A stretch of DNA of 64,000 nt, from the NCBI GenBank assembly GCA_965649825.1, contig OZ287694.1, forward strand, positions 2,430,902-2,494,901, read 5' to 3'. The stretch comes from Penicillus capitatus. Taxonomy: Eukaryota; Plantae; Chlorophyta. The translations under genes were made by a program, and so were the position numbers. Numbering within the stretch: position 1 is the stretch's first letter; each line of letters opens with the position of its first letter. Below, in pieces: positions 15,724-63,435 of this stretch. The notes beneath the pieces are model-generated. The model had not been told where the DNA came from and ran no database searches. It worked only from the letters and a program-made list of their open reading frames with translations.

Positions 15724-16451
15724 TTACTTGTTCATCATGTTGATGGGGCGAACGCCTTGATGTCTCTCTTTGCTCAGACGATCGGCCAGTTTCCAAAGCG
15801 ATTCCTTCTTTCCATTCGCCACTCGACGCATACGTTCCACTGCTTGAATCGCAGCTTCCTCTTTTCCAAGCACACTGATCTGCATCTCCACTTCATCGGC
15901 AATAATCTTGCGTCTCCGTACAGCCGTCCTCAGTTTGTGACTCACAGCTCTTTGGCCTTTATACTTATGAGAGCGCGTCAACTCACGCAGTCCAGGCAAT
16001 GCGCCAGATGCCGTCTTTACCTCCTTCGTATACTCGATGTAGACATCCTGGACCCCCATATCTGCCATACCTGTCTGAGGAAATGGGATAGGCATGGGAT
16101 CGAGAACACACCTCTCATGTCTCTGAGGCGTGTAAGAAGGCAGGATGGATGATCACGTTCGTGAACGAGTGGAGATTGCAGGGCAGGAAGGAAGAGTGTG
16201 TCTGTTGGGATGGGTTCTGCTCCCGCGTCCTTTTCTTTAAAGTCCGAAATTAGCCAGATGAGGTGATCGAGTTTGTCATTGATCAGGGTGACAGAGTGTT
16301 TAACCTCTGCCATGTCTTTCTCGATTCTGTACCTCCATTCCGCATCGCTATAGTCTGTCGCGGTGAACGACCCGTCCATTTGAGGCGAGTGATGTGACGT
16401 CACGCTGCTCGCGGGTAGAAACGACAGGGATGACGCTGCCCCATTACACAT
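15724..16451 (-). CDS. Coiled-coil + GCR1_C-like DNA-binding domain protein; 2 exons
   Basis: WRYRIEKDMAEVKHSVTLINDKLDHL (coiled coil), 41-nt intron, then GVQDVYIEY..LPGLREL..RRRKIIADEV..GKEEAAIQAVERMR..SLWKLADRL, resembling the GCR1_C consensus. Confidence 0.6.
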
Positions 16452-17203
16452 CGGGATCAGAAGAGAAACGATGTCACCTACCAGCCACCGTTCAGAAAAG
16501 CACGAGAGAAAAACCGAAAGCAAGATAGAGAATGTTCTCACGGATACGTATGGCAATAAGACGGGTGGAATAGAGATCTGATCGATTCTCCAGGAATAAC
16601 ACTTGTTGGATGACAGCTGCTTAGGAGCTTCCCCAGGAGAGGATGATGCGACTTTACAGCATTGCACTGGAGGACGATGCTTGCCATAACATCACACAAG
16701 CATGCATGAACAAAGGGCACTTCCTGACGCTTTTAGAGGACATGATCTTGTGGATCATTCGAGAAATGAAAACGCGATGGGCGAAGAATGAAACTGTCTG
16801 CTTATGGACAACATACAACACCATCCAACAGCCATTCCTAGCAAGATTATTTATCCTTAAGATCGTTGCTGGCCGGTTTTAGAGAATGAGATCCGCTATC
16901 GATAGGATATGGGTATGCAGCGAGACGTTAACGTGCCCTTGATGTCGACAGCGACGGGGCCAGTCCAACAAGCTATGACACGTGCATGCTTCGGTTGGAG
17001 CTGGGCGAATGTTTTTGATCCACTCCATCCAAAGATGCGCGTACGGTCCGGCGGCGGATACGCAGCAGCGCGGTCTGACATTGTAGCGATTCTCCTGCTT
17101 CCTCCGCCAACCGTCACTTAATTAAGCGGCTCAGTTTGACCGCTGTTCTATTTCTATTCGCGTTTGTCTTTGCCTTCGTCGTTTTGGACTTCATTCTCAC
17201 GAC

Positions 17204-18425
17204 ATGTCGTCGTTGTGCGGCACTGATTGCGCTTCATGTGGTTGTCTCGAAGACAAGAACGACAAGCGCGTGGTCGCCATTCCCCAGCCACCGCAATTGT
17301 CTGGCGAACAAGACGACTGCCCCATCGCTGTCCGTCGTTATTTAGAACGGATAAACGGGTTGAGCACAGAAGAATGCATGGAGAGAGGATTGAGTTTCCA
17401 TCCCAAAGCGGACGATGTTCTCCTGACAACGGGTTCCAAGTGCGGAACGGCATGGACGCAACAAATAGTGCACGGTCTTCGGTCTGGCGGAGACATGGAT
17501 TTCGACGACGTCGACGCCATTATTCCATTCCTGGAATACTACTGCGATCAAGACGATCAAGCAGAACTGGAATGCACCCAACCATACGCACCGCCACGAC
17601 TCTTCAAGACGCATATTACCTACGATGCGACCCCGCAAGGATTCGGCAAATATATCTTCGTGACTAGGTGCGTTTCGCATCAGGTGCTTTCGCCAGGGAG
17701 CTAAAGTGATGAGGTGCTTTACAGGGATCCTAAGGACGCGGTTGTTTCCTTTTATTATTTTCATTGCGATTGGCTGTTCGAGGAAGATACCATCTCTTTG
17801 GACAGCTTTGTGGAATGGATGGTCATTCGTGACAATGTGCCCTACTCATCTTTGGCCAACGCTACTCAACTTCAGCACATGAGTAAAGCAAAATACCCAT
17901 CACTATCGGCTCTTCACTTGTGGCCTGCAGTGTCGTGGTTCCCCTACCGCAAAGACGCAAATGTCTTGTGGCTGCACTACGAAGACATGAAGGAGGACTT
18001 GGCCTACTGCATCCGTCTCATTGCCGAGTTCCTCGATATCGCCGCCGACAATCCAAAACTGCAGAAGATCGTGGAGCAGCAGGTGATGCACTCTCTCTGA
18101 TATCTAACTCCTCTCTCTATGCCTTGTGTAGTCCACATTCGATTTTATGAAGAACCACAGGTCCAAGTTCGATGCTCACCGCATCAAGGCTGCCAGGAAC
18201 GAAGCCATGGGTCTGCCGCGCGACAGCGGAATGAAAGACAATAATGGCAGGGTCCGAAAGGGTCAGACGAAAGAGGGGATCAAGCTTCTCTCTGAAGACA
18301 TGAACCAGAAGATGGACGCCAAGTGGAAAAGCTTTGTCGAGCCCGTCGTCGGCTACAGCAGCTACGCAGAGATGCGCAGAGCCGTTAATAAAGAGCTCGG
18401 GAGAACCGTCGGTATGGACTGCTGA
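17204..18425 (+). CDS. SULT-family sulfotransferase, copy 2; 4 exons
   Basis: TTGSKCGTAW, RLFKTH, RDPKDAVVSFY, LWLHYEDMK, RVRKGQ. Confidence 0.9.
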
Positions 18426-18431
18426 GTACGT
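17931..18431 (+). repeat. Near-identical copy of 23754-24252 (3' half of sulfotransferase copies 2 and 4)
   Basis: Direct sequence comparison: exon 3, intron 3, most of exon 4 and bases after the stop match with only scattered differences. Confidence 0.9.
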
Positions 18432-19448
18432 AAAGATATTCTTTCCTTTTCTGCATCTGTTGCCGGAGTGATTTCATCCACCGAGCAGAGAACCACACGA
18501 TCCATCGAGCTGCTCTCTTTCGCAGGCAGCGGTGATCTTCAACGCGTAGAAAGTGTTCTTTTGCCGACAAAAGTCTCACGACGTCCTCTTTCCGTTAACA
18601 ATCTTAGCTTCAACTGCTCAAGGATGATCTATGACACTTCGTAGCGTTTAAGGAGATTGATGATGTGCATGATGCGTGCATGGGTCGGGTCGGGCGTCGT
18701 GACGGAGTCAATGGATACGGTTTGTGATACGATAGAGCGTCCCTTCCGTTGTGAAGAAGATCTGTACGCTTTCGATTGCATGCGTCGTATCTCCTCGCCG
18801 TTCGTCATCGACACCTCGGCTGTGTGGACAACTCGCCGACGTCTCGAATTCGCACTGCACGACGGTTCTTCGATCCGTCCCCTTCAATTCGCAGTTCCTT
18901 GACTCTCAGAAATCACCTCCGTTTCGCGCTTTGTTTATTGGCATGGAAGACGAAGGGGCGAACCCATGTGCTGTGCGCCGGTTTGATCTCTTCACGTGCT
19001 GCCTCGAGCAATGACTGGTCGTAGATTCAGTTTCCCGACGGAGACGAGGATTCGAGAGTATTTCGACGCCAGAGGCTCGAGCTACCAAGGTAAGCGTCAT
19101 GGCAGTATCCTTGACGCACTTGACTCGATCTCTATTTTTAGCTGCTCTGCAGCTGCTGCAGGCATCGCCACTCGCAAAGAGGCATAAGAAAAAGGACGGG
19201 AGCTCCTACGTCGAATGCAGAGCCCAGTGGTCTGTCTGTAACAGAAAATTCAAGATACACTATCTAAAGTGACATGACAGGGGTGATTGAACATTGCATA
19301 ACGAGAGTGTGTTGTCTACAGGCTGTGGTTTCTCGTAAAGATGGCGATGCGTTGCGAGCTGTGGTCATGGGAGAAGCTTGCGAGAGATTCGTGGGACGCG
19401 TGCCCGAACATCGAAATCCATCAACGAAATCTGAGACGCCACTTTGAG

Positions 19449-20974
19449 ATGGCAGACGCTTTGGGCCTCGAGCAGCTCGTCGGCGATTCCTTCGTGCATT
19501 CAAACAACGACACGGCGCTCGAAGGCATCCTAGAAGGATACGCAAAAGAGCCTGCGCATGGTGTAACAGTCCAGGCCAAAGGTATGACCAAATGTTCAAC
19601 GCCTTGCCGTCTCTACTGTGGTATCAGGAGGTTTGATGGAGAGGCATGACATCTCCAGTCTCTACAAGAATAATTTGTTGCTTGGTATGGGGATCAATGC
19701 TCAGTGCTTGTATTCGGATACGTCTGACCTCTTGCCGTTTGCCACCGGAGAAGACAATGAGAGAGAAGCCCATGTGCAGCGAACGATGTCTGAGATACTG
19801 CAACGCATTGCTGACAGAGAGAGTACCTTTGAGCAGACGGTCCGTCTGAAGAATCTCTTCTTGGTACGTCATTGTCCTTCCTCAGCACCGATGTGGAGAT
19901 CGCTTCATGCAGCTCTGGTTGGATTCTGCGCAACCTTGCCTGTTCAAAGTCGGCGGATGTCTCGTGGCCAGTCCCGACAACGTCTATCGGTTTCTAAAGG
20001 CCTTGGAAGAGGGTTTCGTATGGCTCAGTGGTACGGAGCCGTCGATTGTCGAAGTTCTGACCGGGAGATGTGCGAAGCCAGATTTGACACCGAGGAAGAA
20101 GACCCTTTTGCGTTCTGGATACGGACACAAGTATCTGACAGGACTCAACGAGCTGTACAGAGATCAACAGGCTTTGCTCGGCATCCAGTCTGTACAGAGC
20201 ATCAGATCCGATCCCAGAATTGGAGCGTGGGAATGGTCATTGAAGCAAAACGACCAGAAACACATAACGGCAGAGGGCGGAGGATCTCAGCCACAGCTCT
20301 CTCCTGCAGAAGCCTCCCCCATGGACCCCGATGCCATGAATCCTGAACCCTTCTGGATGAATATGGATCCTCCGCCGACGCAACGCAATCTGGTGCTCGA
20401 AATGATGCAGAAGGTGCTGGAGGACATCGAAAGTCTAAAGGCTGCTCAAGGTTCCTTGCATGCAAAGATGGACCGTCTATTGCGTCTGCTTGACACCGAC
20501 ACGGCGTCCAGATCTGGAACAGAACAGGAGAGAGCAAGTGGCACACCAGATGTTTCCTCTGGCGGATTTGAGTATGCCTCTCTGTCGAGTCTCAGGAAAC
20601 TGAGTTCCATGAGTATGGAAGATCTGGTTCAGGAATGGACGGTCGGGTGCACATACCGAGGGCAGAAGTTGGGTCCGCTCTCGCACTTTGATCAGCTCAG
20701 GATCGATGGACTGGTGCAATACAATAAGTCGATCAAATCATCCCTGCTCATAAGGAGAACGCTTTTCAGTTTCTTCAGAGAGGTCTTTGCGCATGTGGGA
20801 TCGCGCGAAGAAGCCATCCACCGAATAGACGATGTTCAGAGATCTCTGGGGAAAGATGGGGAGCCCGTTTCGCTGTATGGTCTTTACAAACACGTCAGGA
20901 AATGCAGGAAGAACAGAGTACCTTCTTTCTTTGAACCAGGAAGATCTGGCGAGATCTCCCGAACCCAACCTTAA
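19449..20974 (+). CDS. Crypton-derived protein: Crypton/Ndc10-like N-terminal domain + coiled coil + GCR1_C-like domain, no recombinase catalytic core; 3 exons (in-frame upstream ATG at 19341)
   Basis: Introns 19582-19627 and 19864-19912. RESTFEQ..LFLLWLD..FKVGGCLVASPDNVYRFL..KYLTGLNELYRDQQALLG..RSDPRI resembles the CryptonF N-terminus. MEDLVQEWTVG..GPL..IRRTLF..GSREEAIHRID..SLYGLYK resembles GCR1_C. Confidence 0.62.
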
Positions 20975-21461
20975 CAGTATCGCCCCATCGTCTTATGTCT
21001 TGCACGAATAATGCGCCTGAGCATTCGATCCAGTGACGGCACGATTGTAAGAATGCCCAAGACGGGTAACAGCAGCTGTATTTGGAGCCCAACTGCATCC
21101 GTCACGCGGCACCATACCGGATCGACACGCAATGCATGAAGAGTCGTTGGCAGGCCTGACGGATCTCACTCATGCCGAGCTGTAGAGGCAGGACCTGTCG
21201 TGAGAGAGGGAGTTGCTATGGGTTTGTGCATTGTCTGCAGCGATTCTCACGGTCGTCGTCTGTCGTGGTTTCTTAATGGAGGTCGACGGTGAAGTCTCTA
21301 GCCGTACGCCAACAGACGTCGCTTTCGTCGGTTAAATCTCTGCCTTTGCCCAATCGCCTCGATGAGCGAACGTAGACGGAAGTCTACGACATCGGTGGTT
21401 TCATTCACCGCGTTGTCACGGACCATAAACATCTTTCGCGTCATTCGCAGCACACAAGACG

Positions 21462-22589
21462 ATGTCTACGCCCGACAACGGGGAGTGTTCGCTGGGTCTT
21501 CTGAAATTCTTTGAACGTTCCCGTGGACTGCTCAATCGCGAGGCGTTGATGAAGGGACTGCGATTTCAACCTCGGCCCAGCGATGTCCTGTTGACGACGG
21601 GGCCCAAGAGCGGCACCGTCTGGGTGCAGCACATTCTGCACGGGCTCCGTTCTGGAGGGGACGTCGATTTCGACGAGATCGACACAGTCTTTCCATTTGT
21701 CGAGCTGTACTATGGATACAACGACCAAGGCGACCTGGATGCCGCACAGCCCTTTGAGCCGCCACGATTCTTCAGAATGCATGCCGATTACGAACAGACA
21801 CCCGGATTCAACAAACGCATCGTCGTAACAAGGTCATCCATCCCCCTTCATCCTCGCTCCCCTCATCCTGTCTTCTCAGAGATCCTAAGGATGTGATCGT
21901 ATCGGCCTATTTCTTTTTCAAGGAATGGCTGTTGGACGAGGAGGTCTCGGTGGATGAGTTCGCGGAGTGGATGTTTGTGAAGGAAGGCGTCACACTTACG
22001 CCCTTTGCCAATGCTCCAAATCTGAAACATTTGAGTGAGACGCCGCCACAGATATGTGTCGACAGTTATGTATTGCCGGCTTCTGTAGTCTCTTGGTTTC
22101 CACACCGTGGCGATGACAACGTCTTGTGGCTGCACTACGAGGATTTGAAGGAAGACCTAACGGGCTGCATACATCTCATCGCGAAGTTTCTCGATCTGGG
22201 GGCGAATGACGCGGAGCTGCTGAAGCGTGTGGAGCAGCAGGTAACATTCCGCCCATCGGTCACCGTTTCCATACGTTGTGTGTATGTGCATCCAGGCTTC
22301 GTTGGACTTCATGAAAAAGCATCATACCAAGTTTGATTCGCATCATGTTAAGATCGCCTTGAATGAAGCTCTCGGTGTGCCACGGGATCGTGGAATCGGC
22401 AACTGTAAGGGAAGAGTTCGGAGTGGACAGACGAAGGAGAGTGCGAAGTTTCTGTCAAAAGAAACGCGTGAGAAGATGGATGCAAAGTGGAAGACACTGG
22501 TCGAGCCTGTCGTGGGATACGGCAGCTATGAGGAGATGCGAAGGGCTGTCAATGCAGAACTCGGAAGACGTGTCGGCGAGGAGAGCTAG
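21462..22589 (+). CDS. SULT-family sulfotransferase, copy 3; 4 exons
   Basis: TTGPKSGTVW, RFFRMH, RDPKDVIVSAY, LWLHYEDLK, RVRSGQ. Confidence 0.9.
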
Positions 22590-23085: not shown

Positions 23086-24246
23086 ATGCTGCCTCTTTTA
23101 ACCAACGTGACCACAGATGTCTTTTCCCCCGTAACATGCTCGTCCGCACTTCGAGCGTATTTTCAGCGTACAGGTGGATTGAGTACTAAGGAAGGCGTGG
23201 AAAAGGGACTGGCGTTTACACCCCGGGGTGACGATGTTCTCTTGTCGGTCGGCTCGAAATCGGGTATGACCTGGACGCAACAAATTGTCCACGGTCTTCG
23301 TTCTGGTGGAAACATGGACTTTGAAGACTTGGATACCATCATACCCTTTCTCGAATACTTTTACGCCCACAACACGGAGAACGATTTGGGCCAACACGCT
23401 CAACCGTATGCTCCACCCCGTCTGTTCAAAACGCAGGTTCGTCACGACTGGACACCGAAAGGATTCGGCAAGCAAATTGTCGTGACGCGGTAAGCGCATC
23501 GTCTTCGGGCGTCGTCGTTGCCGAACGTGTTTGTTTCACAGGGATCCCAAAGATTCCATCGTGTCGTTGTACTTCTTTCATCGCGATTGGCTCTTCGACG
23601 GAGAGGAGATTTCGTTGGACGACTTCGTCGAATGGGCAGTTATTCAAGAAGACGTTCAAGATGCGCCATACGCCAACGCCTATCACTTGAAACACCTGAG
23701 TCCGTACCGTTTTGATCTATGATTCCGCTTACTTAGCATCGCCTGCTTTTCAGTCTCGTGGTTTCCCTACCGCAAAGACGCGAATGTCTTGTGGCTGCAC
23801 TACGAAGACATGAAGGAAGACTTGGCCTACTGCATCCGTCTCATTGCCGAGTTCCTCGATATTGCCGCCGACAATCCAAAACTGCAGAAGATCGTGGAGC
23901 AGCAGGTGATGCACTCTCTTTGATATCTAACTCCTCTCTATGCCTTGTGCAGGCCACATTCGATTTCATGAAGAAGCATAAGTCCAAGTTCGATGCGCAT
24001 CGCATCAAGGCTGCCAGGAATGAAGCCATGGGTCTGCCGCGCGACAGCGGAATCAATGGCAACGTTGGAAGGATCCGAAAGGGTCAGACGAAAGAGGGGA
24101 TCAAGCTTCTTTCTGAGAACATGAACCAGAAGATGGACGCCAAGTGGAAGAGCTTTGTCCAGCCCGTCGTCGGCTACAGCAGCTACGCAGAGATGCGCAG
24201 AGCCGTTAATAAAGAGCTCGGGAGAACCGTCGGCATAGACTGCTGA
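23086..24246 (+). CDS. SULT-family sulfotransferase, copy 4 (catalytic His replaced by Gln); 4 exons
   Basis: SVGSKSGMTW, RLFKTQ, RDPKDSIVSLY, LWLHYEDMK, RIRKGQ. Confidence 0.88.
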
Positions 24247-41070: not shown

Positions 41071-41768
41071 CGCAATGCGCGGTAAAGATCGAAGGAGATA
41101 GATGGTTGCATCATGTGTCTTTCACTCCTCTAGCCGCTGTCCCTCTTTTCTCAACCAAACATCTCTTGAGCGGCATAGCTCAGCAATAGGACACCGTTCG
41201 AGTCGCTGTACGCCTAGGCCACCCATCCCTTCACGTGAGATCGAATTCATGGCCGAGATTGAAACAGGCGACCTTGCTGAGGATACTGAGCTCTTCGTCG
41301 AGAGATGGACAGAATGCATTGCCTACGTAGACAAACTTCACCGCATTCTTAGCAAAGACGTCCCGTGAGAGCATTGGCCGCACGAGATTTGGTGCTGGGT
41401 TCTGGTTTCGAAGCTGACCCTTCAGATACTTGACCACGTCGACAAACCGCTTTGAACCGTCTATCTATATTCGTAAAGAGACAAAGACGATGACGCATAG
41501 ACGCAAACAGGGACAGAAGACATGCGCCGAAGCACCTTGACACGTTTCCAGTTATCCGCTGGAGGTGGAATGTTGCCAACGGCTCGGAAGTGGATGGTCA
41601 CTGGGGAAAAAAGTGTATGGGCGGAGATGCAAAGGGTCCGTGGTGGGGAGACCTTTCTCGCCAGACGTTCGAGACATGGAGGAAGACGACTGAGAACGGG
41701 CGCCGTTGTCTCGATACCACGTCGTGTCGAGCCACAGATTGCTTAAACGACGAAACCGTTTGGCGTTT

Positions 41769-41841
41769 GTCCATGTGGCCTAATGGAGAAGGCGTCTGCC
41801 TCCGGAGCAGAAGACTGCAGGTTCGAGTCCTGCCTTGGACG
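41769..41841 (+). tRNA. tRNA-Arg (anticodon CCG)
   Basis: 73-nt cloverleaf: acceptor GTCCATG/CTTGGAC (one T-T mismatch), A-box TGGCCTAATGG, anticodon stem TCTGC/GCAGA around CTCCGGA, B-box GGTTCGAGTCC. Confidence 0.93.
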
Positions 41842-42157
41842 TCACCGCAATGTCGTCGTCATCTCTTTGTGTCGCCTCCATACCTGTGCGACCTCCGCCG
41901 CCGCCAAACACGCGTCTTTCATCTATACACTCTCACAAATCTATTTCCCCTATCCTGTTGAGGCGTTTATTCTCTTTGAACGACGCGTTTGCGGAAACGA
42001 CGTTGCTGCGCTCGAAAACCATACACGCATCATTTGTCATCTCGTTCGTTGAAAGCGTTCATTGCAACGCCGTCTGAAAACGGACCGACCGATTGTTCTC
42101 TGCATATCCTCTGTGCGCAGACGGAATCTCGGCGATACAAACAAACGCACAGACATC

Positions 42158-49958: not shown

Positions 49959-52207
49959 TTACACGTCGTCTACATTTTGAAAGGGTCTTCGCTCCAAGCT
50001 CGTCTGCACAAGAGAGGTCGAGAAATCGACTTCAATGAACTAGATAACATCTTGTCCATCGCGAACGCGACAAATCCTCGTGCGCACCTCGCTTGCTGGC
50101 GATGTACTCCTCGACTCTGATATGCTTTGACGCAGTTGGTGATTTGTTTCGCGAAGGTCTTCGAGCTCGTGGCGAGCGACGTCGACGGATACTGTTGTTT
50201 CCTCGTTACCCATAGGACGAATGATGATAATACTCCCGGACGTCAAACCACTCTACGCGACAGCCGTCCAGAATCGGACGCTTTTGGTCATCGGTGCTCA
50301 CTTTCGCGACCGTCTGCTGATACGCTCGAAGACGTGTCACCTGCTTCGAAGGATGTATAGCAAAGAAACAGCAATCCATCATCTCCAGTCGCTCATCGAG
50401 GCCACAGAGATCGGTAAAGCAGAGAACGTGAAGCTTAGCGCTTTTGCGAGTAAAGACGCTACCGATGTACTGCAGGCTCTTCTCGGCGGGGTCCAGGATC
50501 ATGCCGAAGACGAGGATAGAAGTTCGAGGCCATCTCGGAAAAGATGCGTCGATGTCTTCTCTGAAGTAAAACGTGAGCGTCGGATGCTCGTCCTCGCTCG
50601 CGTTATGGCTCAGCTCACCGAGACAGAGATTCAGATCTTCCAGGTCATCCAAGCAGACAGCGCAAGAAAAAACGCCGTTTCTTCCAGCGGGACGCAACCA
50701 TATGGTGCACTGGGCCGCACGGGATTCGGCATCCTGTTCAATCTACGCGAGACACTGTCCACGACGAAGCGAAACGAACGGTGAAGTGCTGACCATATCG
50801 CTGACTGTGTCCAGTGACTCGGTCGCTGGCAGGATGTACATCTTGCTCTTCGGAATCTTGAACATCGAGGACAGGCCGTCTTTCTTTACCTGCTCTCGGA
50901 TGCGGCTGTCCGTTATGACTTCAATAGAAACCCTCGCCTCTTCGAACAGTCTTATCTTGCCGATGAAATCGGGAGGCGGTCTCGAAATCAAAATTCGCAG
51001 TCCAAATGTTAGCCAACCGTTGCGCAAGAACCCTTTGTCGTTTTCGTCGAAGCTCCCGCGAAATGAAGCCGTCGGAATCTTAATCTGCCAGCCTCTTCCC
51101 TGTTTACCTACACACGACCAATCTCTATGATGCACGAAGATAGAGGCGAGCGCGCGTTCGGAAACTAGTCGCCGCCACTTTCTTCGCGCTCTCTATCGGT
51201 TCTTACTTGCAGCGACGCTTTTCTCCGGAGAATCCCGGTTGAACATAACGACGCGGAAGTCCACCGTCAAATCGTCCAAGTCCGGAGGGATATGCAGGAA
51301 GAACGTCTGACACCAGCCCTGGCGCTCGACCATCCACAGACCCCTGAGTCAGTCGCCTGCAATGACCCCAGTAGGAAGAAGGGACGCACCACTTCCGTTG
51401 TCCGAACACGAACGTCTTCGTCCAGTACTCTCCGCCGTCATCGCCGCCGCCAGTCCCCAAGATCGGCATGACGGACCACTGCATACGGCCGGACATAAAA
51501 ACGCACATAGGAGAGAGCGTCGTCACTTTGCCGCACGCTTCTAAACCCCGTTCGAAGATGCTGAACTCCTCGCGGCCGCTGTTCTCGAACTGCATATGGA
51601 ATTTGAGAACTGCAAACTCATCTCGGACGACTCCCAAACGGCTCTTCTGAATCTTCCCACCATACCGTCTTCCACGTTGGAGGCGGACATGCTTGCCTTC
51701 GAACACTCGACAGATCCACAGAACCCTGTATGGATCCGAGAGACGACACCTGCTACAGCTGATGGATCGTTAATCCACCAATAGCATCGAGACGACGGAG
51801 GCGTCCTTTTGTCATGAAAGCTGAAGTAAGCCTCCAGCTCGTCGTCTGTCGCGGATGTGATGTAACCCGTCCTGTACGTCACATCACATGGAGGTTGTCA
51901 GAGGGGTTGTGGTGGCGAGCAGCTGATCAGCGAACCATGTCAGACCGAGAAACGAAATGTTTTCTGTCTCAAGCATCTCCCCTGGAGAGAGCAAGAGTTC
52001 GTTCGGCACTTCTAACTGCACAGGGGAGTCAAGGGAAGGGATAGAGTGCAAATCATGTGGCATACCAGAACGAGAGCCTTCTCTCCACCGAATTCCTCCA
52101 CTTTGAATTCATACTCTGTGTATTTCCAAGTCCCGGAGCCTCCGCGTCACGATTTTATTCGTATGGAGATGGAACGGCGTTGGATGCTTACCTGAAGTCG
52201 TCCGCAT
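49959..52207 (-). CDS. MATH-MATH-UBL protein derived from USP7/UBP12 without catalytic domain (paralogue A); multi-exon
   Basis: Micro-exon ATGCGGACGACTTCAG|GT. MATH motifs (LETENISFLGLTW; YWTKTFVFGQRKW; GFLRNGWLTFGLRI), EEARVSIEVITDSRIREQV and SILVFGMILDPAEKSLQYIGSVF (USP7 UBL1-2-like). No USP Cys or His box. Confidence 0.72.
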
Positions 52208-53163
52208 GTCGGTGCACAGGGAGTCGAACGGGTCCGAAATGAAAAGGCAGTGCGAACAGAGGTGCAAAACAACGAAGCTTGAGTCGTCGCCTCCTGCGAC
52301 GGAGGGTTGGGCCTGTGTGCTCGAATGAACTGTACGAATGACCACCACCAACAGCGCAGCGTGATCCAGCCCGTCCTTTTCTGACATCATCCAAGACATC
52401 GACAGCATCGAACTCTTCGGCAGAGCAAACAGGCGAATGCTCACACGAGAAAGGAGATAAGCGAACTGGCGAAGAGACTCCGTTGTCTGGAGCTGCCATC
52501 GGCGCGGCGAGATCACCCGCACGCGATCCGTCGCGTCCAATGTTTGAGATCTCTCTTCGATCGCGAAAGCGTCGTGTTGACGACGTCGTTCACATCCGAA
52601 TGCATCGCTCGCGATACGCACACAGCGACGATAGACGGACGACTGTGCGTGTCTTGGCCGTGTCGTCAATGTTGTCTGCGAGGTACTCAGATTCTCGTCA
52701 GTTTCTGTAACCTCAGGTACTGCTGTCTACCGAGTCATCTATCGTTGTTCGACCAACCTTTCGATCGCATAGAAAATCAAGACACGTGACGATAGACGTC
52801 AGTGTTCGGCGCAAAGATGGAACTCCAGATGCCCGTCGTCACCAAGTTCGTTTCCACGAGGCACTTCTGGATCTCCACGATTCAACACAAGATGAGAGGG
52901 CGCTCTGTATTCATCGGACAAAGAGGGCGAAGGTGAAGACGCGAGATCCGATTGCCTCCGTCGAAGAGATACCGAAACTGACTGGTGTTGCGATGGTCTG
53001 TCACATCGAATGTCGCCGTCAGTATAACCTTTCGCGAGAATCCGACTACCACTGAATCGATCATCCATGCTTTCCCCTTCATAGCTCGTCGGTTACGGTC
53101 TGGTCATCGTGGCTGCTCTACACGGCAGACTCTTCTATTGCGAATCGCCTTTTCGCGTTCGAA

Positions 53164-56100
53164 ATGCAAGTCGAAGGTACGTCGTCGCCATTGCCAGCAC
53201 TGCCACGTCCAATGCCTGTCGAGTACAGAGGGAAATGGATTATCTAACGAAATCGAATATTCTTACACACTGAGCAAACACGAATGGTACGCCACTTACG
53301 AGGTGACCCGCCGTGTCCCTTCTGTCACGCTGAGGCTGCCATGTGCAGTTTCGCGTCCATTATTCCTTGCTTGATGACAACGGTGGCAAAGTGGAGACGA
53401 AGACCTTCGAAGTCGACGGCCAGAAATGGTGAGCAGAGGCGATTGGCTGTATCCTCTGAATCTCGCTGTTACATGTTTGGAGGTCGGTGGTCTTGTCATG
53501 CACAAAGAATGAAGAGTTGATCGCGGGACTCGTCCCACGGGACAGGTCGCGACGGAAAGTCTCCTTCACTTTTACACTTGTTAACCATGACGACACGGAC
53601 AAAGACGTCACGCGAGGTGTGTGCTACGTCACATCGGCAAGGAATGGATTGGAGTCCGTTCTTTAATGTGTCAGTGGCTTATGGAGACTTCAGGATTCCT
53701 TACAGGGGAATCAAAGCGGCTCCAATCCCCAAGTCACTCGTCTTCCATCAAGATCCACCCTCAAGCTTTCTCAGAGATAACTTCCTGACGATGCGACTGG
53801 AAATGAGAGTGAGGGGACGAGAGAGTGAACAATGGAAGGTCGTTGTCGATGAAACGGCGACCACCGTTTGCAACGTAAATCCTATTCTCACTCTTTTCGG
53901 AAGAGTGATTCTTGGTGATGCAGTGGAGAATTCGATATCTGCGGGAGTTGAGTCCACGCGTCGTCCAGTCGAGTGTATTCGCTGTGGGAAATTGCAGAAT
54001 GTAGGGTCCCTCACTCATCACCTCCATCCACTCATCTCACTCTTCTGTTGTTCTCAGGAGAATGATTCTCATTCATGACGTATCACCCGTCGCTTCTGGC
54101 GGCATGAGTGTGCTTCTCGAAAGTGTGTCCCATCCCTATTGTTGCTTCACTGGAGAATTGCTCATTACGAATCACCGTTCTCGCGAAGACAATCTCGTGA
54201 CGAGTCTCGATCCCTGCACTAAGTGATGTGACTGACTGTGACGTTTCTCTGTGGCAAGGGATCTCGGAGTATTTCGATGAGGCTTCCGGAAGAAGCAGTG
54301 TTAAAGTACTGGACTGCTGGGAGTCATTGGACGAGGCATCTGGTTTTGCAAACGACGGCTGGATGAGCCTGTCGATCAAACTCACTCAACGGAATCCAAA
54401 GAAACTGGCACAGAACGTGCTGCACATGTGGAAGCAGACCACTTCGGAACGGACGTCTAAGAAAGACGCGGCATCGTTGTGGACGACAAAAGGTATTGGT
54501 ACCACGCTCCTGGCTCTCTCGTACCATGCGCGTTGCAGAGGGCACAGGATGCAGCAGTGGTATTCCTTATGCCTATACTCTCAACACAACTGAATGGTTT
54601 GCCTCCTATTCGGTGAGCTTATGGATATGTCATCGTCCATGAGGCACCACACGTGTGGTTCTGTCTGTGGCAGTGGTGCGTACATCGTTCCCTTCTGGAC
54701 AGAAGTGGTGTAGGAGTAATCACGAAGACATTCTATGCGAATGGCCGAAAGTGGTGCGCACCAAGATGCACATCTGCTTTATGTGTGCAGGGCTATCGTT
54801 CAGGCAGGTCGGTGTGAGAAAGGCCGAAGATGAAAGCATAGAAGCTTGCCTGGTTTCAAAGGAGAGCACGCCCGTAACCGCTCATGTCGGCGTTGCTCTT
54901 GCCAACTTCCGCAACGATGTGCACTTTATCCATCCAAGTAGGGGACAAGCCCTTCCGTGCACCTTGGATGGTACCGAACGACGGTTTTGGTTGTGGCACA
55001 GGCGATTGCGCCATCTTTGAATCTCCCGGGCGTCCTTGGGTGCACAAGATCCTTTTCTCCGATCGGATAAAGGAACCGGGATCTAACCTGATGAAAGGAG
55101 GGTTCTTCATTGTCTTCATGGACATGAGACTCAAAGTGCCAAAGAACGAGATCTGCGATATTTCCATCACAAGAAACGTCGCGGCCTGTCAGGTGCTTAC
55201 GGCACAGATGTGCTGTGGGGAACGATGGCATGTTTGTCTTGTAGTGGAGGCTGAAGCCCCTTTCCGAAACGAAACTCAATTTTGTGTCCACTCCACGATT
55301 CATCATCGGCGACATCGAAATGTCCGCGACGTTGCCGATATCGCAGTACAGGACTAATGGGTGTTTCTTATGGCGTTCACAGGGAGATTGGCTTGTATCA
55401 TTGTGAAGTCCGGGGTCACTCATGGGTGTTGCTTCACAATCTCAGCAACACACCCATTCGCGCAAAATGCGAAGCCCGTGCCAAAAATCGTGACCACTCA
55501 AACAACCGAGTGACAGGCATGGACGATGATGTCACTCTTCTTTGATCCAACTGATCATGGTATCTCTGTCGCAGATGTTGTCGGATCACTCTTTCCGGAT
55601 GATTGGAAAGAAACGCGGGTTTTCCTCACTACTGCCGAGCTGGAGAGAGAAGACATGGGATTCGTGAAGGATGGCTGGATGGATCTTTTGATCAGGGTTG
55701 CTGTACTTGGCACCGAAGGCACAAATCCGGTCACCACATCTCACGTTGCGGACCCCTACGTCATCCGTCCTCAACGTCGAGTGCTTGATCCTGAACCGGG
55801 AACGCTGATGCGTGTGAGAGGTATGTTTGTCCGACAGTTACCTTCGCTGTCCTACAGTGGAGGTCTGGACCAGAGGGCGCCGGTTCATGCAAAGACATAC
55901 AATACAGCTACACGCTCAACAAACACAAGTACTATGCCGTTTACGAGGTCCGTTACTTCAAATCCCCGATCGATATCATTTCATTGCCGTGTGCAGTGTC
56001 GCGTGCACCGTTCTCTATTGAACAGCACAGCCAAAGTGATATGGACGGCGCCTTTTGAGTTGGACTACCGACAATGGTGCATTCCAGAACGCCTTATCAA

Positions 56101-57842
56101 CCATCGCCCCTACTGATGTCATGCATTCTGTGCTTCAGGCGCATCGGAATGCGACGCGAAGTGAACGGCCACTTGACAGCCTGTGTCAAGAATGTGGATG
56201 TGACGCGACTGACGGCGCACATCTGTTTGACTCTTGTGAATCACCGGGATGACAAGAAGAGCCGATGCAAAGGTAGAGAAATCTGCCCCTCGTCCAATCG
56301 ATGATAGAGTTGTCCCCAGGAGCACTTGCTTCGTTCTTCCCGGCGGCCTTTAACGACACGCATCACTTTCAGCTCTGTCATGCCGAAGATGCAAAGGATG
56401 TCTCTTTGGGCTGCTTGAAAGATGATTTCTTTTTGGTGCGAGCGGAGATTCGTCTCAAACTGCCGAACAATGAGCACTGGACAGTTTCTGTTAAGCGAAA
56501 GACGGCAACATGCGAAGTACGCAGAGCAGTCGATAGCCTCGTCCGGGAAAGTGATGCGTGTCATGTGTCGGGTTCGCCAGTGGAGGCTGAGAGATGTGGT
56601 GGCACTGTGTCCACAGTTGCTGACCTCTCAAACATTCCGCATCGGCACAACGGCATGGTGCGAATGGCCACGTCTTGCATTCTGGCTCTCGGTATAAGAT
56701 CTTGTTCTTCTGCAGGAGCTTGGTGCTCTACCAAAAAGGAACGGAATCGTGCTCCGAGGATTTTGCATTGTGCATCTACAACGAAAAAGCCCGTGCCCTT
56801 CGAACAAGATGTGCGTTGAGGCTTGTCAGCAACGAATCTCCGAAGAAGGACAAAGTGAAAGGCAAGTGCTAAATGTATAACTCGACAGGAGAGCTGATCT
56901 TTGCTGTCATACAGTGCTTAAAGAGACCATCAAGGCGAAAGAAAACCGACTGCTCTGCGATCTTTTCAAGAGCGAAGAGCTGTCGGAGAAGTCCTGTCAG
57001 TTTGTGGAGGACGGCTGGATCACTCTGGTCGCGGAGATCACGCTTTTGGATGAGGAGATGGTTCCGCAGTGCACCTCCTGCAAAGACAGACCGCTGTGCT
57101 CCGTGCGTCACGGCAACACGTACATCGTCTGCATTGTTCTGTCGCCGCTGGAGGCGTTTCGGTTGCGCAGGAAGCATCTCTGTTACTGCCTGGACTGTGC
57201 CAAGAAGGCCAGGGAAGCGATTGATGACCATCAGGAACTCAAGTGCCCAGTGTGTCAAGAAGTGGTGGAGAGGGTGGCGATGGAACACGGACCGTACCTT
57301 CCACGTTGTCCGACATGCGAGATCAACCCTACATGTGCCGTTCAGCACAAAAACACGTACGATTTCATGTCCTTCTGTCATCCAGCATCTGCTGTCCTCG
57401 CAGGACACACCTGTGCTACTGCACGCCGTGTGGAGAGAAGCTCGCCCAGAGGTTGAGGAGCGGAAGTGCCCAACACTGTCCTTTCTGTATGGAGCCAGTG
57501 GAAGGCGTCATCATGAATGCCGCTCCGTGGAAGACGGCGGCGGAGAGAGAGAAAATCGCGCAGTGCCACTACTGCAAAGCAGACGTTCCCACATGTGCCG
57601 CGTTCCGCAGAGACCCACACGGAAAGCGATTCAGAGCCTCGTTGGGCACCCAATGCTCTGCCGGCAAACATACATGCCTCTGCAGGGAATGCGCCCGTAG
57701 ACAGCTTCATGAAATTCTCACAGAGAACCAGAAGATCGAGCGTCCAGCCCGTGCCCAACCGGCAGGCCAGATTCTTATCATCGATGCACCCGAAGAGCTC
57801 ATGACACGTGGACGTCGAAGATCTCAGAGTGATGCACAATAA
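53164..57842 (+). CDS. Multi-MATH protein (about 5 repeats) with two complete and one degenerate MDM2-type RING at the C-terminus (paralogue D); multi-exon
   Basis: Micro-exon ATGCAAGTCGAAG|GT. Repeated MATH ends (FLRDNFLTMRLEM, GFANDGWMSLSI, GFVKDGWMDLLI, CLKDDFFLVRAEI, FVEDGWITLVAEI). RINGs CTSC..HGNTKHLCYCLDCA..CPVC and CPTC..HKNTTHLCYCTPCG..CPFC. Central exons only partly resolved. Confidence 0.72.
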
Positions 57843-58518
57843 ATCCCGTTCGAATAAGTCATGAGATCATCATCCATGGATTGTGGGATCTGGAGTCATG
57901 CCAGTCTGAGTGCGTGTGTGACGTCCTCATCTGTGAAGTATCCTTCCCATCCGCCTGTTTATTCTTCATTGCTGTCGATGATTATGACATTCTAAGCTGT
58001 GGCGCAAAGGATTTTGAGGAATGGCGCCATCCAAACGCCTTTCTGATCAGTTCTTTGCATCCGTTGCTGATAATTCTCTATTTTGGTCCATTTTATTGTG
58101 ATTTGTCACAAACGCCTGAAAATCAAGCTGTTATTGAGCACACATATATCAATCTTCTAAAAATCTTCCGAAAGGACGGTTGCATAAATCGCTGGCGTCC
58201 TCCAGAGAATTCAATGAAATCCATCAACGTCCTGCCTTGTATGATTATTTGCCATCTGTATTAAGAGCAAGAAGACGATTTCTCTCTGCCCTGTCGTCAG
58301 GAGATCATCATTTTGCTATGACAGACTGCCACAGATCCCGTCCAAGCAATGCGTACACTGAGCACAGACAGCGCAGATCTGTCATGCATGCCGATCACAG
58401 AGCTTTTGAGATGGAGACGCTTTCTTCACGGCAGGTAAAGCAATTAGCAATTAAATGAGAAGGACGACGCCGCGCCGTTAAACTGACGACCGTCAATTGG
58501 CAGACACCGAGGCGTTGC

Positions 58519-60915
58519 CTAGAAGATCTTGGTAACCAGCCCGGTGTAGGGTTCCAAGCAAACTGGACATTGGTGGAACTCTTCTGCATACAATCTCCGA
58601 GCGCATTCCTCGCACGCACAGATGTGGACCCTACACATACACACCAACTAACCGCGGAACATACGGAGAGCAGATCTGAAGTGAACGTTTCCCCGTGGTA
58701 GAAGCCGGATGTCTGCGGGTTCTCTTGACAGACGACGCAGAGAATGTCTTGTTTAATGGACTGAAAACAATGACATAGATCGTCAACGTATGGTGCAATA
58801 GGAGGATCATCACGAGCTTACGTCGTCAAGAGGTGCACTGACGATCTTTGGAGCGTGATGGGTATGTCCGTTCAGATTCTGAAGCTCTTGACAAAATATG
58901 GCAGCATTGATGGCCTCATCTTCTTTCAGTGGTCGAACGATGATCACACTTCCTGATATTAGTCCACTCTGCAGTCCACAGTATATCTCCTGATCGATAT
59001 CCTACAGTATTTAGACGCACTTCTTTCACAGTTTTCTGAAAGGAGCGTATCTGCACAGCGCAGTTCTCAGACTGCACAACAAAGAAAGAGCATTCCATAT
59101 CGTGCACTGTACTGCAGAGATCGTTCATATCAGTAAAGCAGACGGAATAGAGGTTGGAGTCCTCGAGTGTCAGGATACTCCCAAGTACTCCAGCTTACCG
59201 ACCCGGGGATCCAATAACATGCAAAACAGAAGGACAGAATGTCGGCAACGCCTTGTGGGTAGACCGCCTGATTGCACATAGAAAACCAAGACGTTATATA
59301 TGTCGAAGTCCACCAGCCACGACAGCTCGCAGAAACGGAAATCAAACTCTTCCACTAACGCATCCACGCAAAGAGCCTTGAAGATTTCATCTCCCTTTGC
59401 ACAGAGAAGCCAGACGGTTGATTGGGATGGATCCCAGCTTGCATCTCTCTGAATCTGCAGAGAAGACAATTGCTCCATCCATGATCTGGTCTCCGGAGGA
59501 TACCAGTTGTTTCATCGTACTCAGTGGCCAGAACGGCGCGGCACGGTAAGCGGGAGATGTCTCTGTGCTAAAGACATCAATCTTCGCTGTTGTCGCCACA
59601 TGTTGTCCGATCGTTTTATCGGTGAGAACTTCGATCCCACAGGGTCGTTCAGAAGGCGAAGAGAAGTCTCCCATGAATCTCATTGGGAGATTGCCGACGA
59701 GAATCATTCGCAGTGCAAATTTTAACTAAGGTTTATGCTCAGCATGCTCTTCTTCCGTTTCTTTACTGGGAGGAGGTTGTACAAACGAAAACTGAATGCC
59801 CTGTCCTTCTGGATTCTGATTTCCTACAAGCATCTCGCCATACTTAACGAACCAATCGTGGCCGATGTGTTTCGCCGCCTCCGATGTGTATCATACATTT
59901 CCGTTCCATCGTTTGGATCTCAATCGTTCCGTAACTCGAGCATGGTACGCACTTTGAATATTGCTCTGTTCTAGAAACGATGGATTGATGAGGAGCGCCT
60001 GGCACTCGATCGCAATGGGGTCCATAGTTGACAGATCCACAACGTCAAGTATCATGTTGCCACAATCTGCATGATGCAAATGAAGTCCCCTGACCCCATT
60101 CACAATTGTCACGCACGATGACAAGGGAAAGAAACGAACGGACCATTCTCTTCCATAGGAGATAAATCGATCGGTCAAGAAGACTTTGATGCGTGCATGT
60201 CGTTTCACTCTCCACTGCAACAACTCAAATCTCCAAAGCGGCGCTCTCGTACGGTTATACCACGCAACACGTATCAATGACTCCTCGGTAAACCGTGAGT
60301 TCTTCATCCCATGACTGAAATCGCAGACGGGATTCGATCGTAATGAATCCATCGTTTGCTGCAGGACTTGGAGGACAAATCCCTCCGTAACAACCACCCT
60401 GTACAAGTGGAGACGAAGCACCTGTGGAGAAGAGCGCCAGAATGGTGATGGTCATCGAGGAGGCGAAACCTGGAATGCAGACAGGTCGGACAAATTTCCA
60501 ACAGCATCGCAGCGATTGACAACGGCTAACAGGACTGCACAGACGCCAGACTAGCTCGATACTTTCATCCCTTTTGGTCGTCACACATGCCTTCCTGCAC
60601 GTCACATCTTTGCAATGGAGTGAGAACGAAGACGAACCAGTCATAGCCGGAAAATGCTATCTCTTCCGTTTCGAACGCAACGTCGGGCGTTTCCAGCAGA
60701 TCTTCATGCACCAAGACCTAGAATGTCTACGGCGAAGGGTGAGCCATGGATGGTTGAACGTACGGTGAGGCTCATTGTCTCCCATGATATTCGTTTTCCC
60801 TGTACCGCGTATTCAATGCCTCTCCATTCGCCGAGTTCTGCACAAAAGAGGTTAAGCGCAAGTCTGAGATCGCTCTGTTCTGTTCCGTTCACTTACGGAA
60901 CACATCAGACGACAT
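58519..60915 (-). CDS. MATH-MATH-UBL-(MDM2-type RING) protein (paralogue B); carries a frameshift and stops that may be spliced out, so possibly a pseudogene
   Basis: Homologous exons to A and C (FETEEIAFSGYDW, GIEVLTDKTIGQHV, SVLLFCMLLDPR), ending CVVCQENPQTSGFYHGETVHICACEECARRLYAEEFHQCPVCLEPYTGLVTKIF. One base is missing in the C-run at 59180-59182. Confidence 0.68.
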
Positions 60916-61222
60916 TCTCGCGAAAGGAAGTGCACAGCAGCGGAAGTTCGGATGCCTTTTGCAGTGTGTATCAACCGTATGCGATGATTTTCCATTCTTG
61001 GACTGATTTGATGTGACATCTGACGATCTTTGTCCAACTGTGGAGATGTGCCAATCGTTTCCGACTCCACTGATGCGTCTCATGACATCGTCAACGTGAT
61101 GCGTGACGTCCGACGATGACGCATCTGTGCTGTGAAGGGACGACAACCTCAGCGTTCTCAACATTTCATTTCATTTCTGTCTCTCTCTACGAGCCGGCGA
61201 CGGAAACGAGTCGTCGTCTAAC

Positions 61223-63435
61223 ATGCGGTCGTCTTTCGGTAAGCGATCGATTACCATACCCCTGTCGCGTTCACACAGCGTGACAATCCAACAGGACATA
61301 GGGTTTCAAACGGGATAGAGTACGAAATCAAAGTGAACGAGTATCATGGACAGAAAGGCCTCATTCTGGTATGCTAACTACTCTTACCGTCCTCGATTTC
61401 GTCTCCGTTGTACTGACCCAATAACGGTACAGCTGGAAGTGCCGAAGGATCTCTTGCAGTTTCCCGAGAAAATCATGGAGACGGAAAAGATCTTGTTGTT
61501 GGGTTATGCCTGGTACGGTTGGTCTTACCTGAGCCGTCCTTGGCATTCCGATGTGACACATAGGACGGCTTGTGTGACCACGGCGAACGATGACACTCTG
61601 GAGGCGTATTTCTCTGCGCACAGTTCCGTGAGCACGCCGCCTCGACATTGTTCCTGGTGGATTAACGATCCTTCGACCGTTGCAAGTCATGTCACCTTGA
61701 TGTGACGTCTTATGAGTGTGAAAATGCATGGTGAAGGCAAGCAGTCTCTTCTAGAACAGGGAAGTCTTTTTGGAGGGAAGATTCAGAAAAGCCGTCTTCA
61801 GATCGGCAGCAACGCATCGGCGATCCTCACTTTCCATTTGGAACTGCAGGACCAGCCTCGTGACGAATTCTCCATCCGCACCGACGGCTCCGTCGCATAC
61901 TGCAAGGCGTCGTTGTCCCCCGACGCCCATATCCATTCCAGACGTCTTGTCTTCTGCAGTGGGCAGTGAGGCCGATCCCGGGAGAAGAAAACGGAGAGTA
62001 CTGGACGAAGACTTTCGAATTTGGTCAGCGGGACTGGTGCGTCGCGTTCCTTGCCCTTTAGAGATCGCTTTCGCATGTGTGGATGCTGAAGGGGTCTGTG
62101 GATGGTGGAACGTCAGGGAGCATGTCAGACGTTCTTTCTGCATCTTCCTTCAGAACTGGACAACACCTTCGTCGACTGTCGAGTCATTCTGTTCAATCGT
62201 ACCTTTCCAGATAAAAGCGTCGCCGCTCGTAAGCATGTGTTCGATGCCGTGGACCGCCGAGAGGTGACGGAGTGGGAATGCTGTCTAGGAAAGCAAGGAA
62301 GAGGATGGCTGCTCAAGATACCGACCGGCGATTTTCGTCTGAGCTTCTCTGACAGTCAGGAAGGGTTCTTACATGATGGTTGGTTACTGTTTGGACTGCG
62401 GATTGCCATTTTAGACAAGCAATCAGCATGCTTCCCCCATCCTCGGGCATTTGAACGGGCGATGGTTTCCGTCGAAGTGATCACAGACAGGCGCATCCGT
62501 GAGCATGTGGAGAACAGAGGGCTCTCCAGAGTCTTCCGCATTCCGCGAAGCAAAACGTACATCCTGCCGGTGCACGCACCGCTCGAGACTGTTCGAGAAA
62601 AGGCACGCCGTCAAGTAATGTCTCTCTTTCAGACGGGGTGTGCTGGCACAGATCGAGCGAGATGCTGGGCCACATGCAGTGCCGTCGACGACATGGCTGT
62701 GTCCTTCCCAGTCCAACGGCATCTTTGCCAGAGTCGTCTGTCTATGCGATCTCGAGGAATTGAAGCCATGTCTTGGCGAATTGGCGAGTCATGACGAGAA
62801 TCGGGATGATCATCCAACGCTGACGTTCTTCTTCCGAGAGTGCATAAGCGTTACCCTGATGCGATGGCCTCGTCAATCAGTTCTCCTTTTTGCTATGCTC
62901 CTGGATCCCATCGAGCAAAATGTCGAGTACCTTGGCAGTGTGTTCGCCCAGAGGAACACAAAACTCCACGTTCTGTGCTTTACGGATCTCTGTGGCCTTG
63001 ACCGTAAGCTAGAGAACATGGAGTGTACGTTCTTTATATGGGGCGAGACGGAGCAGCTCATGCCAATTCGGACATATCAGCAGACGGTGGAGAAAGTGCG
63101 TCGTCATGCCGTCGATGCTCATGCTGCATGGGCCGCGCCTTAGAGTGGGATGACGACCGGAAGTATCGTGATCGTCCGTCCGATGAACGATGGAGAAACG
63201 GTGACTTCGTCAAGCCTCGCTTTGGAACTCCAGAGCGTGTCTGGAGATCATCCCTTCCGTCATCGTATGACCGAGACGTCGAGCTCGACGCCAACAAATC
63301 AAACCGTACATTCATGTCTCGGCGATTCTCTCCGTTAACATGTGGACGGTGCAGTTCGTTCGTATGGAGAATTCAGTCGTTGACGGACAAGGCAGTGGGA
63401 CATTATCGAGTATCTTCCATGAAGACGAGGAGTAA
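61223..63435 (+). CDS. MATH-MATH-UBL protein derived from USP7/UBP12 without catalytic domain (paralogue C); multi-exon, one GC-AG intron
   Basis: Micro-exon ATGCGGTCGTCTTTCG|GT. METEKILLLGYAW, YWTKTFEFGQRDW, GFLHDGWLLFGLRI, FERAMVSVEVITDRRIREHV, TWLCPSQSNG, SVLLFAMLLDPIEQNVEYLGSVF. Confidence 0.75.

Follow-up and report, generated by a model that had tools for sequence, protein, structure and literature searches.

USP7 (HAUSP), known as UBP12/13 in plants and Ubp15 in yeast, ranks among the best-studied deubiquitinases, with MDM2 as its best-known partner. It carries an N-terminal MATH domain, the USP catalytic domain, the UBL1-UBL2 pair, UBL3-5 and a C-terminal activating peptide. MATH domains act as substrate receptors in TRAFs, TRIM37 and SPOP, while RING domains recruit E2 enzymes, and RINGs of the MDM2 type act as dimers through their tails. 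The 64,000-nucleotide stretch of Penicillus capitatus contig OZ287694.1 analysed here (the window) contains, at positions 49959-63435, a cluster of four intron-rich genes, A to D, in which modules of these kinds are combined in a different way. The full architecture of the family is two N-terminal MATH domains, a USP7-type UBL1-UBL2 pair, and a C-terminal MDM2-type C2H2C4 RING with a hydrophobic tail. An original prediction, made from the DNA sequence alone, regarded these proteins as derivatives of USP7 that keep its docking surfaces and replace deubiquitination with sequestration or ubiquitination. The interpretation that we favour, with moderate confidence, is that they are a lineage-specific birth-and-death family of MATH/UBL RING E3 ligases and RING-less relatives, with a UBL1-2 module, and probably also MATH domains, that descend from a USP7 duplicate.

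With USP7 the family shares the order of the modules, MATH at the N-terminus and then UBL1-UBL2, and the motifs hhLLF.K.YDP....l.Y.G and a final GDIIVF-type strand (GS[IV][IV]I[IV]RP in the family). It differs from USP7 in that the catalytic domain, UBL3-5 and the C-terminal activating peptide are missing, the MATH domain is doubled and the acidic patch of UBL2 is not kept; moreover, some members end in a RING, and the predicted chemistry would therefore be the opposite one (ligase, not protease). The RING resembles those of MDM2 and MDM4 in its identical C2H2C4 spacing, its HG.T.H and CP.C motifs, and its position at the extreme C-terminus with a short hydrophobic tail. However, the N-termini are MATH domains, Pfam (E ≤ 1) detected no SWIB p53-binding domain, acidic domain or RanBP2 zinc finger, so that the family members are not MDM2 orthologs, and one gene (B) has RINGs in tandem.

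As in TRAFs, TRIM37 and SPOP (MATH-BTB), a MATH domain, which in those proteins is a peptide-binding substrate receptor, is joined to an E3 module. In TRAFs and TRIM37, however, the RING is N-terminal and the MATH domain C-terminal, which is the reverse of the order found here; the family also lacks TRAF zinc fingers, coiled coil, B-box and BTB (no zf-TRAF and no BTB in Pfam), and has the USP7-type UBL pair between MATH and RING.

Three proteins from the databases carry UBL1-2 without the catalytic domain, in fusion with an E3 or signalling module, namely P0070 (TRIM-like RING plus UBL1-2), P0083 (BTB plus UBL1-2) and P0144, a plant-like protein in which two copies of UBL1-2 flank a TIR fragment. 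Unlike the family described here, they are close to animal or plant USP7 (Pfam E 1e-41 to 1e-62; P0070 and P0083 are 43-44% identical to human USP7), have no MATH domain, and carry a different kind of E3 module (TRIM-like C3HC4 RING, or BTB) at the N-terminus. Their fusions appear to be independent events. The architecture had been predicted to be undescribed, and a full-text literature search indeed found no description of a MATH-MATH-UBL1-2-RING protein, although the idea is not unique, as the USP-less RING-UBL1-2 and BTB-UBL1-2 proteins of the database demonstrate. The parts, then, are known and the combination is new; the re-use of USP7 UBL1-2 is recurrent, and the present family represents one divergent and expanded instance of it.

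Architecture of the gene cluster

The bounds of the cluster, 49959 and 63435, coincide exactly with the stop codons of genes A and D. The genes are arranged in two head-to-head (divergent) pairs, A/B and C/D. The second and third exons measure 74 and 80 nt throughout, whether in A, C and D or in any of the three repeated units of B, which points to a common ancestor of all four genes. The prediction of four paralogs in two divergent pairs was therefore right about the pairs and the common origin, but B is not a simple paralog, because it is made of three MATH-MATH units and has no UBL region.

Gene A (52207 to 49959, minus strand; 11 exons, 558 aa) encodes MATH1 (52119-51581), MATH2 (51433-50983) and the USP7-type UBL1-2 (50937-50214), followed by an acidic tail without a RING. 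Its start codon (52207-52205, minus strand) is separated from that of B by 956 bp (52208-53163), which presumably act as a shared promoter. Gene B (53164 to 57842, plus strand) could be threaded through 24 exons into one open frame of 1101 aa, this being one possible reading. Its MATH-MATH units lie in tandem (53249-54389, 54559-55708 and 55894-57048) and are followed by two intact tandem RINGs, RING1 (57070-57267) and RING2 (57307-57500), and by a degenerate RING3 (57564-57701) that has lost its last Cys pair. B may in fact be two genes, split after unit 1 at a 40-nt intron (54499-54538) or at an ATG around 54521.

Gene C (60915 to 58519, minus strand; 13 exons, 589 aa in a conceptual translation) shows the full set of modules, i.e. 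MATH1 (60820-60312), MATH2 (60190-59693), UBL1-2 (59641-58930) and, at the extreme C-terminus, an MDM2-type C2H2C4 RING (58742-58522) with an intron inside it (58686-58631). Gene D (61223 to 63435, plus strand; 11 exons, 516 aa) contains MATH1 (61312-61855), MATH2 (61993-62413) and UBL1-2 (62459-63182), and ends in a short acidic tail without a RING. The 307 bp between the start codons of C and D (60916-61222) are kept in two related contigs (L001 and L002, see below) and may function as a promoter.

As predicted, therefore, three genes (A, C and D) combine MATH-MATH with USP7-type UBL1-2, and two of the four (B and C) carry C2H2C4 RINGs. No Pfam match to the USP catalytic domain (UCH, PF00443) was obtained on any of the four proteins, and a tblastn search with 12 USP7 sequences revealed no catalytic-domain match in the whole 64-kb window; the four best of the weak matches that it did give were the UBL regions of D, C and A. 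MATH2 and UBL1 lie within one exon, about 15 residues apart. Genes A to D are thus without a hidden USP domain, in agreement with the prediction. Nor did Pfam match USP7_C2 (UBL3-5, PF14533) on any of the four proteins at E ≤ 1; past UBL2 there are only 30-70 further residues, or else the RING follows.

Relationship of the UBL region to USP7

The UBL motifs on which the original prediction relied are present in A and D. The first reads EEARVSIEVITDSRIRE in A and ERAMVSVEVITDRRIRE in D, the second WLRPAGRNG in A and WLCPSQSNG in D, and the third occurs in the variants LLFAMLLDPIEQNVEYLGS, LVFGMILDPAEKSLQYIGS or LLFCMLLDPRVGKLEYLGS. Searches with standard profiles gave a consistent but sub-threshold signal: the Pfam profile USP7_ICP0_bdg (PF12436) matched A, C and D at identical positions of the profile with E 1e-3 to 4e-2 (A 1.1e-3, D 1.4e-3; 18.5 bits vs a cut-off of 27). 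When a profile of six family proteins was run against all PDB sequences (177,635), only USP7 C-terminal constructs were retrieved, on UBL2 and with E 0.6-1.5, while a single-sequence phmmer search of D against PDB returned nothing relevant.

For profile-profile comparison by hhalign, 39 animal UBL1-2 segments were collected on the USP7 side, and a 40-sequence alignment of USP7 UBL1-2 was used. With the six family sequences the match had a probability (Prob) of 74% and E 2.7e-5. When the family alignment was enlarged by 33 fragments obtained in an exhaustive profile search of 1.84 billion proteins, Prob rose to 95.8% and E fell to 7.2e-9, in an alignment that runs collinearly through both UBL domains over 191 columns. 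The real score was 62, compared with 15 for the reversed alignment and no more than 22 for 30 block shuffles (E 0.018 or worse). The exhaustive search also reached P0144, a true USP7_ICP0_bdg protein (Pfam 3.4e-62), at E 5.6e-4. On the strength of these alignments the UBL region of the family is considered homologous to USP7 UBL1-2, to which it is about 17% identical, and descent of the module from USP7 appears well founded.

RING domains

Gene C ends in CVVCQENPQTSGFYHGETVHICACEECARRLYAEEFHQCPVCLEPYTGLVTKIF. Its RING matched Pfam zf-C3HC4_3 above threshold (E 1.3e-8, 34.9 bits), and its best and almost exclusive matches in PDB were MDM2 (3.4e-9) and MDM4 (2.6e-7), the next being MUL1 (7.7e-3). 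Gene B also exceeded the zf-C3HC4_3 threshold (E 1.7e-6, 28.1 bits), and its RINGs retrieved only MDM2 and MDM4 from PDB. The spacing of the ligands, C-x2-C-x10-H-x4-H-x3-C-x2-C-x11-C-x2-C, is MDM2-like.

Relatives of the cluster were restricted to two assemblies in ENA, ERZ26696514 and ERZ25074695. Contigs L001, L002 and L003 are ctg291874, ctg297294 and ctg303767 of ERZ26696514, and L004 belongs to a different assembly. Four further genes of the C type (MATH-MATH-UBL-UBL-RING) are found on these contigs, at L002 12545-14842 and 15659-18014 (minus strand), L003 598-2896 and L004 5791-8090, so that the full form is present in both assemblies. In all four, the RING has its eight zinc ligands and its internal intron at the same position, and the C-terminal tail GL[IV].K[IV][FY] is kept. 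They are located just downstream of the D ortholog, and the cluster of the source genome therefore probably extends past the end of the window at 64000.

Genes A and D retain the motif EL..L, which precedes the linker to the RING, and look like RING-less derivatives.

Coding status and selection

When the exons of D were projected on L001 and L002, and those of A on L002, full open frames were obtained and all splice sites were kept. The ratio of non-synonymous to synonymous substitution rates (dN/dS) was 0.186 for D vs L001, 0.249 for D vs L002, and 0.186 for A vs L002, at dS 0.34-0.44. These features identify A and D as constrained protein-coding genes. Both are under purifying selection overall, and the three sequences compared leave room for positive selection at specific sites.

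Gene C carries a single-nucleotide frameshift in the window copy, at 59180-59181 (minus strand), where a G run supplies only two bases for the Gly codon in the conserved motif EYLGS (TTG GG|AGT). It represents either a very recent pseudogenization or a homopolymer error of the assembly. The database open reading frame (ORF) P0117 ends at the same position. No further lesions were found in C, and rescue of the frame by splicing was considered and rejected. In the window, gene B reads open through its 24 exons. The syntenic stretch of L001-L003 has no C and contains B solely as partial or rearranged copies, and the gene content of the cluster varies among the related contigs.

The exhaustive profile search returned 38 family fragments at 50% clustering, whereas word-indexed homolog searches had returned only 2 and 6 proteins. 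The family members found in the protein databases are all ORF fragments of exon size that lack Pfam annotation, and it should be noted that the family escapes routine annotation pipelines. A scan of metagenome loci gave either no relatives or an alignment too divergent for pattern making.

Origin and possible function of the family

According to the interpretation favoured here, the UBL1-2 module, and probably the MATH module, would stem from a duplicate of the host USP7 gene that lost the catalytic domain and UBL3-5, doubled its MATH domain and gained a RING. Since MATH is a substrate receptor and RING an E2 recruiter in known systems, the RING-bearing members (the C type and B) are most simply seen as RING E3 ligases. 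Their MATH and UBL modules would bind a substrate or an adaptor, while a RING dimer would recruit the charged E2. C-type proteins may reasonably be expected to form homodimers through their RING tails, and the two adjacent RINGs of B could pair inside one chain. The predicted replacement of deubiquitination by ubiquitination is thus plausible for the RING-bearing members, considering that zinc ligands and tail are kept in C and in the four C-type paralogs. For A and D, which are conserved without a catalytic module and consist of binding modules only, the most economical guess is a role as non-catalytic adaptors or as competitors for the same ligands.

Several observations count against this interpretation. 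The acidic segment DELMDGD of human UBL2 aligns (hhalign) to SG(L/M)T(S/T)GS in the family; in the complexes with ICP0, DNMT1 and UHRF1, this segment binds KxxxK peptides through residues E759, D762 and D764. In B, the position that matches Ile440 of MDM2, an E2 contact, is Ser or Thr, and directly behind CPxC every member of the family has Leu, Met or Gln in place of Arg. The MATH domains of A, C and D were undetected by Pfam and by PDB profile searches, and emerged only from profile-profile comparison. A structure prediction for the database protein P0001, based on a 10-row alignment, had a mean predicted local distance difference test (pLDDT) score of 41.7, and its Foldseek neighbours were mostly antibody chains and hence meaningless. 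To these must be added the frameshift in C and the absence of an intact B ortholog in L001-L003, which makes the RING partners look dispensable at this locus.

The origin of the MATH region is the point at which the derivation from USP7 meets its most serious competitor. Pfam MATH_2 was above threshold in B only, in the first unit (E 1.5e-9, 38.6 bits vs 32). Over their first 250 residues, A, C and D are collinear with the units of B (hhalign, Prob 95.2%, E 2.4e-8), and the two halves of the region align mutually (Prob 84.9%, E 6.5e-6), which justifies the assignment as MATH-MATH. A profile of the MATH region run against PDB gave only chance matches to prolactin receptor. Compared with a single partial USP7 MATH sequence, the two halves fell into the right register (GRGW/NDWGF; GFLHDGW/GFIKDD), with a Prob of 2%. 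By these two comparisons, a specific affinity of the family MATH to that of USP7 over other MATH families was not shown, and the predicted derivation from USP7 consequently stands for the UBL1-2 module and lacks such a tie for MATH.

It is conceivable, therefore, that a MATH-RING gene (TRAF- or TRIM37-like) or a MATH-only gene captured USP7 UBL1-2 by domain shuffling, and that the MATH domains do not derive from USP7. Gene B, with MATH units and RINGs but no UBL region, would fit this possibility, and the independent joining of UBL1-2 to a RING (P0070) and to BTB (P0083) in other organisms indicates that the module is mobile. On the other hand, MATH followed by UBL1-2 is the exact order of USP7 minus the catalytic domain, with a joint of about 15 residues inside one exon, for which a single internal deletion is the simpler route, and B could equally have lost its UBL region. 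We regard shuffling as a possible, though not the likelier, history, and derivation of both modules from a USP7 duplicate as the preferred one.

A more ambitious version of the latter would see the family as a 'Rosetta-stone' fusion, in which the docking modules of USP7 and the RING type of its classic partner MDM2 are united in one chain that has expanded into a variable gene family. Given an active RING and selection of substrates by the MATH and UBL modules, it would be a new class of E3 built on a deubiquitinase scaffold, with A and D as regulators or sensors paired with the RING genes within each divergent pair, possibly for self/non-self or stress surveillance. This seems to us rather doubtful; if it were true, modules of the USP7 and MDM2 types would seem to have been functionally linked for a long time. 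Irrespective of this, a family with USP7-type binding modules, no protease and an MDM2-type RING suggests that a deubiquitinase scaffold can be converted toward a ligase, and P0070 and P0083 suggest that such conversion is recurrent. The family may also offer natural separation-of-function variants, which could reveal what MATH and UBL1-2 do alone, and the tandem RINGs of B would be a new setting for MDM2-type RING dimerization.

The original prediction had gone further, and had proposed that the docking surfaces of USP7 are kept, the proteins being dominant-negative sequestrators of USP7/UBP12 clients, or immune decoys that ubiquitinate effectors directed at USP7. Such a role would be in line with USP7-type modules without a catalytic domain, with a multi-copy family that varies among related contigs, with the presence of a NACHT gene nearby in L001 (see below), and with P0144, whose TIR fragment indicates that UBL1-2 can enter immune-type proteins. 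We nevertheless consider it unlikely. The claim of retained docking surfaces fails at the KxxxK-binding acidic segment of UBL2, DELMDGD, which is now made of Ser, Thr and Gly besides a single hydrophobic residue; clients shared with USP7 are not expected by default at an identity of only about 17%; and dN/dS values of 0.19-0.25 denote overall constraint, with no signature of an arms race or of diversifying selection.

That the cluster is decaying duplicated DNA, made of functionless pseudogenes, is very improbable. The frameshift of C falls in its most conserved motif, RING3 of B has lost its last Cys pair, and the syntenic position in L001-L003 has a truncated or rearranged B and no C. However, A, D and their orthologs keep 10-11 exons with splice sites and open frames, at dN/dS 0.19-0.25 and dS 0.34-0.44; B is open through 24 exons; C has one lesion only, which sits in a G run and may stem from the assembly; and the RING is kept in the C-type paralogs elsewhere. 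Least credible of all is that the likeness to USP7 UBL1-2 reflects generic beta-grasp similarity or chance: although the 18.5 bits in Pfam are under the curated cut-off of 27, the PDB profile E-values are 0.6-1.5, and the P0001 model is not usable, the match is collinear over two consecutive domains with E 7.2e-9 (0.018 or worse for shuffles), USP7 is the sole protein recovered from the PDB sequences, a true USP7_ICP0_bdg protein is significantly matched among 1.84 billion sequences, and the strongest of the weak tblastn matches of USP7 in the window are to the UBL regions of D, C and A.

Gene models

Raw, unspliced ORF pieces gave only weak Pfam matches, and spliced models were therefore required. 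On these, the profiles performed unevenly: zf-C3HC4_3 was found in B and C and MATH_2 in B only, while the UBL region was recognized through hhalign, Pfam USP7_ICP0_bdg being below its cut-off. The models of A-D were rebuilt with canonical GT-AG introns only, guided by alignment to L001 and L002, by junction search and by an exon-chaining script. Because the script produced too many splits at low intron penalties, penalties of 8-10 were used together with curation by hand. The resulting introns measure 40-122 nt. For B, the model is based on exon chaining and junction search, and the internal repeats were located by tblastx.

A first search with a rough D protein yielded two ORF fragments, 85% and 81% identical. 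Their source contigs, L001 and L002, show synteny with the window, and the DNA identity is about 80-83%. In the three-way alignment of the D region (window, L001 and L002), indels of a length that is not a multiple of three are confined to short stretches flanked by GT...AG, and this pattern defines the positions of the introns.

The exons of A, found by junction search, are 52207-52192, 52139-52066, 52015-51936, 51871-51750, 51696-51527, 51478-51390, 51343-51207, 51107-50806, 50742-50302, 50252-50088 and 50039-49959 (minus strand). A 42-nt intron at 51206-51165 was rejected, as its acceptor is not kept in L002, whereas the 99-nt intron is. Gene C, on the same strand, has exons 60915-60897, 60837-60764, 60717-60638, 60594-60470, 60421-60261, 60214-60144, 60089-59936, 59878-59783, 59725-59504, 59454-59021, 58968-58822, 58760-58687 and 58630-58519. 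Those of D (plus strand) are 61223-61238, 61295-61368, 61433-61512, 61564-61678, 61760-61891, 61960-62036, 62092-62228, 62289-62590, 62652-63095, 63144-63236 and 63355-63435. The D intron 62591-62651 is 61 nt long and requires splicing; an alternative donor at 62615 is possible (GTAAT; absent from the L001 and L002 orthologs), and an 18-nt mini-intron at 62615-62632 was discarded because it does not restore the frame. In both orthologs the corresponding intron is 63 nt long, open and in frame, which is why database ORF callers read through it (P0001 and P0002).

Genomic context

The locus is present on three contigs of ERZ26696514 at differing coverage, i.e. 103x (L001), 144x (L002) and 188x (L003). 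L002 hardly differs from L003 over the family genes; L001 is a version that is rearranged differently. These observations suggest haplotypes, strains or sibling species of a single eukaryote that has diverged from the window by about 18%. On L001, the D ortholog is followed about 5 kb downstream by a very large ORF (16434-21041, > 2095 aa) with NACHT and HEAT/PDS5-type repeats. At the edge of L002 (1-563) there is the ORF of a retrotransposon without long terminal repeats (non-LTR), with endonuclease and reverse transcriptase.

The window itself is eukaryotic, with a guanine plus cytosine content of about 51%, and includes housekeeping genes for a Mot1/BTAF1 helicase, Nop14, BCD1 and an OST-alpha-type transporter, as well as a sulfotransferase family. 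The latter is of the cytosolic type and comprises at least four paralogs (7798-8770, 17414-18399, 21574-22569 and 23269-24220) of about 65% DNA identity; Pfam Sulfotransfer_1 matched 8064-8897, and an extra copy is found at L001 20-1000. The gene at 736-4070 (minus strand), made of two long ORFs, is unusual for a eukaryote: its product has Chlamydia-PMP repeats and a right-handed beta helix, after which come a Cys-rich stretch and a probable membrane anchor. A tRNA-Arg(CCG) at 41768-41843 (plus strand) is the sole Rfam/ARAGORN match in the window.

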